The notes beneath the pieces were generated by a model, which saw only the letters and a list, made by a program, of their open reading frames with translations, was not told the DNA's origin and did no database searches. Shown one piece after another: positions 29,767 to 45,227 of a DNA stretch of 64,000 bases (the stretch's first letter is position 1; every line of letters starts with the position of its first letter). Source of the DNA: Dicyema japonicum (lineage: Eukaryota; Animalia; Dicyemida); NCBI GenBank assembly GCA_011109175.1, contig RDEW01000008.1:67228-131227 (forward strand), in the 5' to 3' direction. Made by a program: the position numbers and the translations under genes.

Positions 29767-30627
29767 TCAACCCGACCGCCCAGACGCGATGACATAACAA
29801 AAATAACTAATCATTGGAATAAACAAATTAATTAAGACAATAATATAATATTTCCCCTCTTATCCCACATAGTCTCAATAAAATATGAAAATTAGCCAGT
29901 TGATAACCAAACTGTTTCTAAACGTTAAACTCACAAATTACCAATACTTTGGCCTTTTCTGGGGTTAAAACGTCCCCCACTGAGCACAAATGGTAATCAG
30001 CAAGCAATACAACCTTACCTGAAAATTAACACAAGCATAACCATTCTCTAATGAAGTGGGGAGACCCAATGTCCTCAAGTAGGGCTCAATCGAGTGAGGA
30101 AACCTATCCAGTACTCCTGACTCCAAATCTACGTCCACCGTGGACTTGAAACCGGCACAGGCATATGTAGGGACCATTACTTTGGCAAAATATCTATAAT
30201 AAGTACCACAGTTACTTTATAATGTCTTCCTTAGTCTGATTAGTGAACAACAGCCCTCGACCACCTGAGATTAGAGATGAGATCTTGTGCAGTCCAGGAA
30301 ACAGTTCCTCTTCCGGATTGGTCCCTAATGCCTTCGCCATGACTTTTTTCTTCCCAAAAAAGATTCTGAAGTGATTATAAACACAACCTCGAATCAGTTA
30401 AACCCACTCTGACATCTCTCATTGCTGAGTTTAAGAAGTTGTGCGCTGAAAAGACAAACAGATGGTCATATTTAATGATGGCATCGCGAATCCACAATTA
30501 GGTTAAAGATTATACGTTTTCTATTAGGTCCTGTTTGTGTTTAGCTCCTTTCTTTTGTGTTTGCGTTAAATTGACTTGTTTTTAGTCGCTAATAGATACC
30601 TTTAATCTTCCTCTTTGATTTTGGCAT
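29767..30627 (-). CDS. MRTO4: mRNA turnover protein 4 (ribosome biogenesis factor)
   Basis: MPKSKR.....LTQT.KKG, IFFGKKKVM..ALG, GLLFTN, FPHSIEPYLRTLGLPT and VLTPEKAKVLKQFG. Six introns of 22-25 nt; intron 2 ends in GG. A probable 1-nt deletion before MWD makes the stop uncertain (29832 or 29767). Confidence 0.95.
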
Positions 30628-37230: not shown

Positions 37231-37289
37231 CTTGGACACTATTGGATGACAACGCGACGAGGATTGGGGTTTCCGTTCTTTCAGATTCA

Positions 37290-38152
37290 CAGCTTTTAAT
37301 ACTCTTGAAGTTTTCCGCACCTCCTTTATCAGCTGATTAAATCTGTATAGCCATCCATTGGAAGCAGTGAAATCTTGATTTGAATTTCTATATGCAATTT
37401 TACGTGCAATTAGCTTTAAGGTTGACCCACTGAGTGGGAAACCTTTCGACCTGAAATTACGAAAAATCTCGTAAATTTTGAATTTCAATTCGGATCCAAT
37501 TCTCCCTTCCGATGTTGAGAAGCCCTGAGATAAGATTCCTTCCCTTTTCTTTTTTAGTCGGTATAGCATTCCTTTAGAAATGTTAAATCTTTCACAAATC
37601 AATTTATCCTTATAGAGACCTGACTGTATATCCTTGCAAATTCTGATCTTTTCAGAATAACTTTAAAAATTGATAATTACAATTCCTTACCAGGTTAATT
37701 AGCTTATGTTACGGGTTCGATTCTTGCTGCTGTTCACCTGGTGGAAGGTTCCACGCATCTACGATGCCAAAAGGGTTTGACGAGTGACGCCGTCATCAGT
37801 GGATACTCACTGCGGAACTGAATTGTCTAGAAAGGACCCACAAAAAGAAAAAGAAAAAAAAGAAGTGAAGATCTTGGTTCTGCGATTAGTTAAAATTAAC
37901 TGTTCTTTACTTAAATAAAGTGTGTGTCTTGCCTATGCGGAGCTATAGATATCATGACTCTCGTGAAAAGGCTATTAAAAAAATCAAAAATTATAGAAAT
38001 ATATTAATGAATCGTTTATGATAATATAAAATCTTTCCCCAGTAGGAGGTTTAGTTCTTTAAAAATCATCGTATTTTATAAAGATGGCAAAAATATTTCC
38101 CCAAAAAAAGGTTTCCCCGCTACTTGGGTTTCCCCAATTCGGGGTCGCACTG
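37290..38152 (-). mobile_element. pogo/Tigger 5' fragment with left TIR
   Basis: TA-CAGTGCGACCCCG terminus at 38152-38154; CENP-B-type HTH FRSKGFPLSGSTLK..A....F.ASNGWLYRF. Confidence 0.8.
37695..37976 (+). mobile_element. tRNA-derived SINE, 5'-truncated, inserted in the pogo fragment
   Basis: B box GGGTTCGATTC, core and 3' end CTCGTGAAAAGGCT closely match the 52252 copy. Confidence 0.9.
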
Positions 38153-41244: not shown

Positions 41245-41757
41245 ATGCGTTGTAACAATTACATAGTGCCTACTGAAAGACTAAAGCATCACAATAAATC
41301 AAGAAAATGCAGAAATCGTCCAAAATACAGATCAGGTAAGAAGGAGACATCTATCAAAGTATATTTTAAATAGATTAGTCAAGGCATACACAATACTTCA
41401 GGAATCTCGTTTTATACTTGTTCAAGGTGTCCCTTCAGTCTCTTCAGATGATGACTTTTTTGCAATTTTTGACAACCTAAGAGACAAAATAGAAGTATTT
41501 AGCAAACTTGATGACTTTCCCTACTCAGAAAAATTCACATATACTTACTGGATTGCATTTTCTAATATAAATTATGCCAGGTAACGAAAATAAGGAAATA
41601 AGGGCAATTTAAGAAGAATTTTGACTGTTTTGAGTTCTTTGGGGGATTACTACACATAACATATTCTTTTGAGTCTGAGAAAGTAGGAGACGTGAGGTCA
41701 AAGATTAGGCAGAGAAGACAGGATGTTGTCAAAAGATTAGAATTTTTGTGTCTCTGA
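41245..41757 (+). CDS. RBM48: RNA-binding motif protein 48 (minor spliceosome factor)
   Basis: Spliced product HH...CRNRPKYRSG...IKAYTILQES..ILVQGVP...YWIAF....A.....D..EFFGGLLHITY..E follows the RBM48 pattern along its length. Introns at 41359-41383 and 41581-41602/3; a 1-nt deletion near 41411. Not annotated in the ORF track. The stop may instead be at 41783 via a further 26-nt intron. Confidence 0.88.
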
Positions 41758-42199
41758 ATTGTTATTATTTTAGACAAAAATGATGAAACTTTAAAAAAAG
41801 AAATAGTTTGTGAAAAACCATTAATTGGTCCGTGTTTTCAGCCTACGGACTCTTCTCTGTTGGATAATATTAAAAATAAAATAAAAATGGTAACTTTTGC
41901 ATTAAATGTGTTTAGATAGGTAAACAAAATGATAATATGATTTGTATAATATGTTTTGAAAGTTAAAATTACTTATTTTTTATTAAGAGTTTATTGAACA
42001 ATAACTTTAACTATCGGATCCTTAAAACATGCTCTATTACAAACATATAAAAAATAGCAAAAGATAAGGTGCTATTTTTTGGTGTTTAATATCACTGTTT
42101 TGATTTACAATTAAGAAAAATATGAAAACAATTTATTAGGGAACAAGAAAATCAAAATAATCCAACTGATAAAAATGAATGGCTGTTTTCCCTTACAAC

Positions 42200-42869: not shown

Positions 42870-44838
42870 ATAATAATCGCAATGAAAGTTAAGCACAATG
42901 TTGGATTACAGGATTTGAACGGAAGGATGCCTGATGAATATGGAATGATATGCAGTTGGTTATCAGGAACGCTGTAATAAAACATTTTAAATACGAACGC
43001 CGGCCAATGCTCTGAGTGGCTCTCTGTCAACACCCTAAACATTGCTGAGCTCGTAAAGCTGCTAAAGTCTCTGGGAATATAGACGAGATAAGAAAACTTA
43101 ACTCTGAATTCAAAAAGGCAGCCAGGAAGGATAAAGAAGACTACTGGAGGTTACACTGCAAAAAAATGGAAGATGACTATAAGAGAGGTCACACCAGGAA
43201 TGCGTATTTACAACTAAAAAGATTACGAACCTCACTTTACGAAAATGATGGGCAAAATCAAGGACAAGGATGGTGTTGAATTTCTAGGTCAACAGAACAT
43301 CCGAAATCGTTGGAGAGAATATACGGAACGGCTATATTCAGAAATTGTGCCCACCCATATGTGTTGATGAAGCAAAGTTGGGTGAGGGGCATAAAATCCT
43401 TGAGGAGGAATGCGTGTAGGCTACACGGCACGAAGATCGACAACATCTCAAGCGAATTGTTGAAGGCTATACCAGTGACAGCTATCACCAGTCTATGTCA
43501 AAAAATTTGGGAAACTGGTATTTGGCCACGCGAGTGGAAAATATTTATATTTATTTTAACACCGAAAAAAGGCGATAACAAACTGTTCAAACTATCGTAC
43601 AATAGCCTCAATTCCCCACGTCAGCAAAATACTTCTAAAGATAATACAACATCGTCTAATGCCAAATGCCGAAATGAATCTACCGGATGTCCAAGCAGGT
43701 TTCAGGAAGGGACAAGGCACAAGTGACCATATAGCAAATGTCCGGTGGATTATGGAGAAAGCCCATGAATCTCAAAAGAATGTATACATGTGCTTCATTG
43801 ACTATCGGAAAGCTTTTGATTTCGTTATACATGACAAGCTTTAAAAGAATTTGGATTCGATGCCCATCTGATATTACTTATCAAATCTCTTTATAAGGAT
43901 AAAGAAGCTACTGTTAGAACAGTGTATGGAGATACCGATTGGTTCAAAATTGGTACAAGAGTAAGACAAGGATGTTTATTATCTCCCATCCTATTCAATA
44001 TTTATGCCGAAATGATCATGACTGATTTAGATACTATCTCAAATAACGGGATGAAAATTGGAGGCAGGAAATCAATAATTAGCGCTATGCTGCGACATAC
44101 AACCTTACTGGCTTAAACAGAGGATGGCCTCAGGGAGTTGATTATAAGATTCGAGAAGAGAGCGCCGTCTTTTGTTTGTTGCTAAATGTCAAGAAGACCA
44201 AAATTATGATGACTGCTAATAATGGAACTAAAAATTGGGAATGAGAAAATAGAGAGTTGTCGATGTTGTCTGTTGTCTTTCTGGGATATTTAATTAATCG
44301 GAATGGTGACGGAGGCTTGGAAATCAAGAGGCGAATTGCCATGCGCCTTCCTGAGAATGAATAGAATTTGGAAAAGCAAAGATATTTGATTAAGGACCAA
44401 ATGCAGACTGGTTGCAATCGTGTTCCCGGTTTTTTATACGGCGCAGAATCATGGACATTGAAAAAGGCGATAGGCGAAGAATTAATGCTTTTAAGCTGTG
44501 GTGCTGGAGGAGGTTACTAAGAATCCCTTGGACCTCCAAAGTAACAACCATCAATGTACTCAAACGGGCGGAAACGGACATTTTGCTAGAAAGAATCGTA
44601 AAACACAGATTGGCGTTCTTTGGGCATGTTGTCTGCTCTGATTCCCTGGAAAGAACCATTATGCTGAGCAATATAACTGGGAAGAGAAGACCTGGTCGAC
44701 CGAGGACACGGTGGCTATCCACGATAGAAGACGTCACGGGAATGCCTATATCAAGGCTACTCCAAATTGCGACGGATCGGGAGAGTGGAGAAGAGATCTC
44801 CAAGGGTCGGAACGACTTAATTTGGATAACATAACATA
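42870..44838 (+). mobile_element. RTE (BovB-like) LINE, 5'-truncated and frameshifted
   Basis: KAARKDKE.YW, QAGFRKGQGT.DHIANVRWIMEK, FIDYRKAFD, VRQGCLLSPILFNIY, FKLWCWRRLLRIPWT; ACATA tail. Confidence 0.92.
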
Positions 44839-45227
44839 ATAAACCAAAAATCACAAAAAATTAAATGGAATACGTGGCATTGATCCCATCTCTTTAAGTA
44901 TCCGTCTGATCTTTGCTCGGTGTTTGTCCCGAGATCAGACGCATACCTTGTTTGGCGTGTTATAATTATGTTAGTGTCAGCTTACAAACTTATTTCTTTA
45001 AATATCGATTAAATCAATGAGTGACTAGAAACCACATAATGAAACAGTATAATTTGTCATATAAAAGATAATTGACAGCAGCCTATTGATACCACTTAAA
45101 CTCGAATAATCATTAAGAATATGACTAATTGGTCACGATAGTGTCGATTGCCTCATAAGTACACACAAATAATCCCAAATGTATTAAAATCAAAATTATT
45201 AAAGTTATACAATATATTAATGATTAA

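Follow-up and report, generated by a model that had tools for sequence, protein, structure and literature searches.

An RBM48 orthologue concealed by micro-introns in Dicyema japonicum, in a genome with components of the minor spliceosome

In humans, RBM48 forms a dimer with ARMC7 that joins the activated (Bact) minor spliceosome, where it attaches to U6atac at its gamma-monomethyl-phosphate-capped 5' end and contributes to positioning the duplex of U6atac and the 5' splice site (PMC11874965, PMC9762485). Across eukaryotes RBM48 is retained where U12 splicing is retained and lost where it is lost (bioRxiv 10.1101/341917); according to the maize paper, CG34231 of Drosophila is a divergent RBM48-like gene. 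In a survey across eukaryotes, minor introns were shortest in Blastocystis, with a median of 39 bp; this survey left out introns of less than 30 bp, and dicyemids are unmentioned in its text. The published assembly of Dicyema japonicum comprises 67.5 Mb in 377 scaffolds with a GC content of 36.7%, and its introns are very short (PMC6736024). According to a study from 2026, introns this short occur in no animals other than D. japonicum and the myxobolids, and the splice signals of D. japonicum are reduced to 'GTa' and 'AG'; minor splicing and non-canonical ends are not mentioned there (PMC13644364). No link between Dicyema and the minor spliceosome was found in the literature searched.

The locus described here is located in a window of 64,000 nucleotides of D. 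japonicum DNA (contig RDEW01000008.1). On the plus strand at 41245-41757, an earlier note on this DNA had proposed a hidden, spliced RBM48 gene. Our analysis confirmed this gene, since three collinear exons match an RBM48 profile and two of them also match the RBM48 entry in the PDB, and all motifs that had been named (KHH..RPKYRSG, AYTILQES and FFGGLLH) are present. The gene consists of three open segments in frames 1, 2 and 1, of which the first is opened by an ATG at 41245 and the last is closed by a TGA at 41755-41757. Its parts are:

41245..41358, plus strand: exon 1, 38 codons from the ATG, in a frame-1 open reading frame; contains KHH..C.NRPKYRSGKKETSIK, the N-terminal RBM48 extension
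41359..41383, plus strand: intron 1, 25 nt, GT..AG, phase 0
41384..41580, plus strand: exon 2, 65 aa, frame 2; core of the RRM-like domain (AYTILQES..LVQGVP..YWIAF..)
41581..41603, plus strand: intron 2, 23 nt, GT..GG; non-canonical ends, obligatory excision
41604..41757, plus strand: exon 3, ..FFGGLLHITYSFESE..RQRRQDVVKRL.., frame 1, with the TGA at its end

With the stop counted, this three-exon model comprises 155 codons, resulting in a protein of 154 aa. Intron 1 is the sole GT-AG excision that links frame 1 to frame 2 without a gap against the profile stretch avkvyti (..SIK|AYTI..); alternatives starting from the GT at 41336 (24, 38 or 43 nt) led to the wrong frame or to a gap against the profile. 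At the second junction, the match of exon 2 runs as far as profile position 98, after which exon 3 restarts gap-free with positions 99-100 filled, and in human RBM48 the match of exon 2 ends at residue 98 and that of exon 3 starts at residue 104. A GT-AG intron of 22 nt (41581-41602) was rejected here because the frame shifts, as was one of 14 nt, after whose removal three extra residues and an in-frame TAA would remain. The intron boundaries are corrected accordingly: intron 1 has 25 nt, and at intron 2 a length of 22 nt breaks the frame while 23 nt fits. If intron 2 is read as GG..AG at 41580-41602 instead of GT..GG at 41581-41603, the resulting mRNA is identical. As explanations of the tiny introns, a nucleomorph and a ciliate genetic code were both rejected; no stop codon has to be reassigned to read the RBM48 gene. 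A search of the genome showed the locus to be single copy.

Two further observations concern the surroundings of the gene. About 4 kb upstream, a 144-aa open reading frame on the minus strand (37231-37662) matches the DNA-binding domain of Tc5 transposases with 38.5 bits and is a remnant of a pogo/Tc5-like transposon. At 44393-44860 long open reading frames are present on both strands of the same stretch (156 aa on the minus and 146 aa on the plus strand); no Pfam match was found for the 156-aa minus-strand frame, and the overlapping frames are possibly repeat-derived.

All homology searches were run exon by exon. A profile made from the first 165 residues of 16 metazoan RBM48 orthologues was compared with all 2,849 six-frame open reading frames in the window, and only three of these matched, all of them at this locus and collinear: exon 1 at profile positions 7-36 (E 7e-8), exon 2 at positions 24-98 (E 8e-20) and exon 3 at positions 101-143 (E 3e-11). 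Such an outcome lies far outside what chance would produce. Among 177,635 PDB sequences the sole significant match of exon 2 was human RBM48 (7DVQ chain I, residues 39-98, E 2.2e-5), which was also the one match of exon 3 (residues 104-147, E 1.2e-5). Exon 1 alone is too short to score and had no PDB match, and no Pfam model matched any of the three exons. The search with exon 2 in 1.84 billion representative proteins yielded 25 matches, a few of which are repeat proteins. In the non-repeat matches, query residues 2-63 align to approximately residues 30-100 of proteins of 83-524 aa, and the named ones are RNA-binding protein 48 of Nematostella, Actinia, Hydra, Strongylocentrotus (sea urchin) and Oscarella. 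Reciprocally, the named best matches of exon 2 as well as the PDB searches lead to RBM48 only, as the earlier note would have it.

There are 35 columns in which 15 or more of the 16 orthologues share a residue, and at 25 of these the Dicyema protein is identical to them. The N-terminal extension specific to RBM48 (HH..RPxYRxGR..AVKVYTI..ES) was found, with exons 1 and 2 matching the profile, and the FFGGxLHVxYAPE block together with the helix following it (human residues 104-147) was found in exon 3, where YAPE is changed to YSFE. Judged by its sequence, the gene at 41245-41757 encodes an orthologue of RBM48, and we regard this assignment as settled.

The presence of RBM48 led the earlier note to two alternatives, namely that the lineage keeps a minor spliceosome or that RBM48 was repurposed after loss of U12 splicing. 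Three of the four specific snRNAs that it had named were found in the genome with scores above the Rfam thresholds. U12 reached 85.4 bits, and its 5' region, which pairs with the branch site, is almost identical to the consensus; U11 reached 67.6 bits and keeps the conserved 5' AAAAAGGGCU; U6atac scored 37 bits against a gathering score of 33, keeps AAAGGAGAG and beat U6 in the clan competition. The fourth, U4atac, is a candidate located at C355:123513-123629 on the plus strand, which with 32.4 bits stays below the Rfam gathering score of 53. Its 5' end can pair with the U6atac candidate in stem II with 12 base pairs plus GGGA/UCCC, and stem I is formed by a GCGCCA/UGGCGC pairing between the two. 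Both stems differ from the human sequences, with changes on both strands. Also present in the candidate are a kink-turn motif, CCAAUGAG, and an Sm site, AUUUUUUG; the sub-threshold call as U4atac is based on these two elements and on the pairing with U6atac. The true U6 and U4 genes were found at loci other than those of the U6atac and U4atac candidates. Such a divergent U4atac candidate merits addition to a seed alignment.

Proteins of the minor spliceosome were found as well. The ubiquitin-like domain of SNRNP25 is encoded by two adjacent exons (24.7 and 24.3 bits) with a GT-AG intron of 23 nt between them, and CRIPT was detected with 94.8 bits at C345:285980-286261 on the plus strand. The models for PDCD7 and the SCNM1 zinc finger, which are short or of low complexity, had no match in the genome and were silent in the controls too, so that their blank result carries little weight. 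The CRIPT gene contains an in-frame GT-AG intron of 24 nt with two TAA codons inside, a typical example of how micro-introns conceal genes from lists of open reading frames. RBM48 thus co-occurs with U11, U12, U6atac, the U4atac candidate and SNRNP25 in one genome. Together with CRIPT and the AT-AC introns described below, all this fits the first of the two alternatives, and the proposal that the D. japonicum lineage keeps a minor spliceosome is supported by these sequence matches.

The search for U12-type introns with a loose pattern (RTATCCTT, 0-30 bases, TCCTTRAY) did not show an enrichment, with 22 matches compared to 19 for the reversed pattern used as control. Three of the matches have the full ATATCCTTT 5' site, the TTCCTTAAC branch site and an AC end. 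Since the loose pattern is not enriched, the evidence for U12 introns rests on these few well-formed cases in coding context:

58 nt: AT-AC intron interrupting a PI-PLC Y domain, whose profile the downstream exon matches with 84 bits, beginning at position 52
48 nt: AT-AC intron in an ArfGAP gene
52 nt: AT-AC intron candidate; the flanks are open and have no clear homology

Excision of the 48-nt intron restores a gap-free spacing from FKRP to FIRDKYE, which is that of human SMAP1. Matches to a pattern with a longer spacer were rejected; most of them are copies of repeats, and the full branch consensus was seen in none. Among the U12-like matches, the repeat copies include three identical strings of 65 nt, two near-identical ones, and two on C68 about 24 kb apart; they are not introns and can mislead any count of D. 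japonicum minor introns that relies on patterns.

The AT-AC introns found have 48-58 nt and are about twice as long as the ordinary introns of D. japonicum (23-25 nt). The view that the signals of a U12-type intron are hard to fit into 22-25 nt, put forward in the earlier note on steric grounds, looks right in light of these lengths. We infer that minor introns have a floor near 50 nt in this animal, where U2-type introns have shrunk to about 23-25 nt. U12-type introns that stopped shrinking at about 50 nt would provide a natural estimate of the minimum length required by the U11/U12 machinery.

Intron 2 of RBM48 has no in-frame GT-AG solution, and therefore non-canonical splicing, a one-base assembly error or a broken allele has to be considered. 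The possibilities are genuine GT..GG (or GG..AG) splicing, an error of one base in the GGG run at 41602-41604, and a broken allele of the gene. The window has no assembly gaps. A comparable intron was found in the same window:

30492-30515, minus strand: intron of MRTO4, 24 nt, GT..GG, obligatory; 11 kb from RBM48

The exon before this intron corresponds to residues 8-28 of human MRTO4 and the one after it continues from residue 30-31, which leaves no room for a gap, and no AG is present near the intron end. With gap-free flanks and no AG nearby, it is a second obligatory micro-intron in the window that does not end in AG. A shift of one base cannot mend it, and its presence counts in favour of genuine non-canonical splicing of RBM48 intron 2. 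GT-GG is known as a rare terminal pair of mammalian U12-type introns (PMC1557818), and the MRTO4 intron contains TCTTTAAC, which has one mismatch to the U12 branch consensus. RBM48 intron 2 has neither a U12-like 5' site nor a branch motif, which counts against a U12 origin. It is possible, though slightly less probable than the contrary, that intron 2 is a genuine 23-nt GT..GG intron which, together with that of MRTO4, marks a class of introns in Dicyema in which distance, and not an AG, determines the 3' end. If this were true, the GT..GG introns could be shrunken relics of minor introns, or they could show that the micro-intron spliceosome measures length. A 23-nt non-canonical intron in RBM48 would, if real, bear on how the 3' splice site is chosen in micro-introns.

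Three other explanations for the locus have to be weighed. That the gene encodes a different RRM protein, which resembles RBM48 by chance, is extremely improbable. The blank Pfam result for all three exons would be compatible with such a protein, and two of the top-listed matches of exon 2 are unrelated repeat proteins with repeated alignments. However, the PDB contains many RRM proteins, and two separate exons independently picked RBM48 and no other; the named best matches are all RBM48, and the N-terminal extension is specific to this family. A decaying or allelically broken copy is a somewhat better candidate but still quite unlikely. In this case the 22-nt GT-AG intron at 41581-41602 would be used, the frame would shift after exon 2 and a truncated protein would be made. 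It is true that the second junction offers no other GT-AG pair of normal size and that this one breaks the frame, and the published assembly has a heterozygosity of 1.24% and merged haplotypes (PMC6736024). Exon 3 is nevertheless open for 50 codons, matches the RBM48 profile with an E-value of 3e-11 and has kept the residues FFGG, H, Y and E, which are close to invariant. Moreover, this would be the sole RBM48 copy in a genome that needs RBM48, the DNA is free of gaps here, and the GT..GG intron of MRTO4, 11 kb away, is equally obligatory and not to be mended by one base. A Dicyema-derived protein was sought with the exon 2 query in the library of 1.84 billion proteins as a test of the junction, and none was found.

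The remaining explanation is the second alternative mentioned above, here in the form that RBM48 now serves, instead of or in addition to its old role, in the splicing of the U2-type micro-introns of 20-25 nt. The reduction of the protein to its core, with 154 aa in the three-exon model, would fit such a change, as would the findings that maize RBM48 also contacts U2AF subunits and that minor-like introns respond to the loss of RBM48. But the premise of a loss of U12 splicing is false, since all four minor snRNAs (U4atac as a candidate), SNRNP25 and AT-AC introns are present, and no sign of a new partner or a new domain was seen in the sequence. With U12 machinery and AT-AC introns in place nothing speaks for repurposing after U12 loss, and we consider this use of the protein very unlikely. 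Since a minor spliceosome and AT-AC introns occur in the same genome, retention of RBM48 is expected, and with U12-type introns of 48-58 nt it is unremarkable, an outcome that the earlier note had itself allowed for. The gene is thus very probably the single-copy RBM48 orthologue of D. japonicum doing its ordinary job. The Dicyema protein would be expressed and would act in U12 splicing as the human one does; its presumed RNA target U6atac and the rest of the core minor machinery coexist with it in the genome.

The C-terminal end of the protein is less clear than its core. Downstream of exon 3 the following candidates were identified:

41750..41773, plus strand: candidate intron 3, 24 nt, GT..AG; would excise the TGA and keep the frame
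41774..41919, plus strand: candidate exon 4, with a TAG at 41917-41919; the protein would have about 200 aa

Frame 1 is open for 53 codons past the TGA of RBM48 (41758-41919, plus strand), which at the local composition is expected by chance with a probability of about 0.011, and the codon score of candidate exon 4 lies in the 99th percentile of 534 open reading frames of similar size. Compared with a profile of the C-terminal motifs of RBM48, candidate exon 4 had no match (rank 359 of the 2,849 open reading frames), and it matched nothing in the PDB or in Pfam. Two profiles were used to look for the C-terminal motifs IGP and SLD..IR.KL in it, and they did not support their presence. ATTAAA and AATAAA signals are located at 41869, 41875 and 41901, within the open stretch after the TGA. 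The stretch 41758-41919 could be a fourth exon or a 3' UTR, and the chances that candidate exon 4 belongs to RBM48 are roughly even. The three-exon model lacks the SLD..IR.KL motif and the basic KRKRI end that mark the C-terminal tail of most animal orthologues. This tail varies, and the NCBI domain database (RRM_RBM48) does not use it to define the family. We infer that the Dicyema protein retains the conserved N-terminal core without the long, poorly conserved tail of RBM48 in other animals. The description of the protein as trimmed to about 150 aa agrees with the 154 aa of the three-exon model and is uncertain to the extent that the in-frame reading frame runs on past the stop.

Taken alone, the RBM48 gene adds one orthologue to those of a splicing factor already known, and it was left off the gene list owing to its tiny introns. 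As a piece of a coherent picture, it suggests that an animal with introns among the shortest known still runs a minor spliceosome. A working minor spliceosome with introns of about 50 nt in an animal with 23-nt introns, as the genome would indicate, appears to be unreported in the literature searched.

Compared with human RBM48 (7DVQ chain I), the Dicyema protein has in common the RRM-like core, the N-terminal HH..RPxYR.G..KxYTI..ES extension and the FFGGxLH..Y..E block, and the two are collinear over human residues ~15-147 without a gap at either exon junction. They differ in length, with 154 aa in Dicyema (about 200 aa with candidate exon 4) and 367 aa in human, in the long C-terminal tail, which the Dicyema protein lacks, and in the change of YAPE to YSFE. 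Most animal orthologues have the SLD..IR.KL motif and a terminal KRKRI, whereas the Dicyema model matches neither. Short forms of RBM48 with little beyond the domain are found elsewhere, for instance in Nematostella (A7ST14, 154 aa, perhaps a partial gene model) and in Oscarella (XP_065830256, 204 aa); the Oscarella protein ends in KRKRI, unlike the Dicyema model. With respect to the introns, the situation is similar to that in Blastocystis, as both organisms keep short minor introns in a compacted genome; Dicyema, however, is an animal, and its ordinary introns have only about 23-25 nt.
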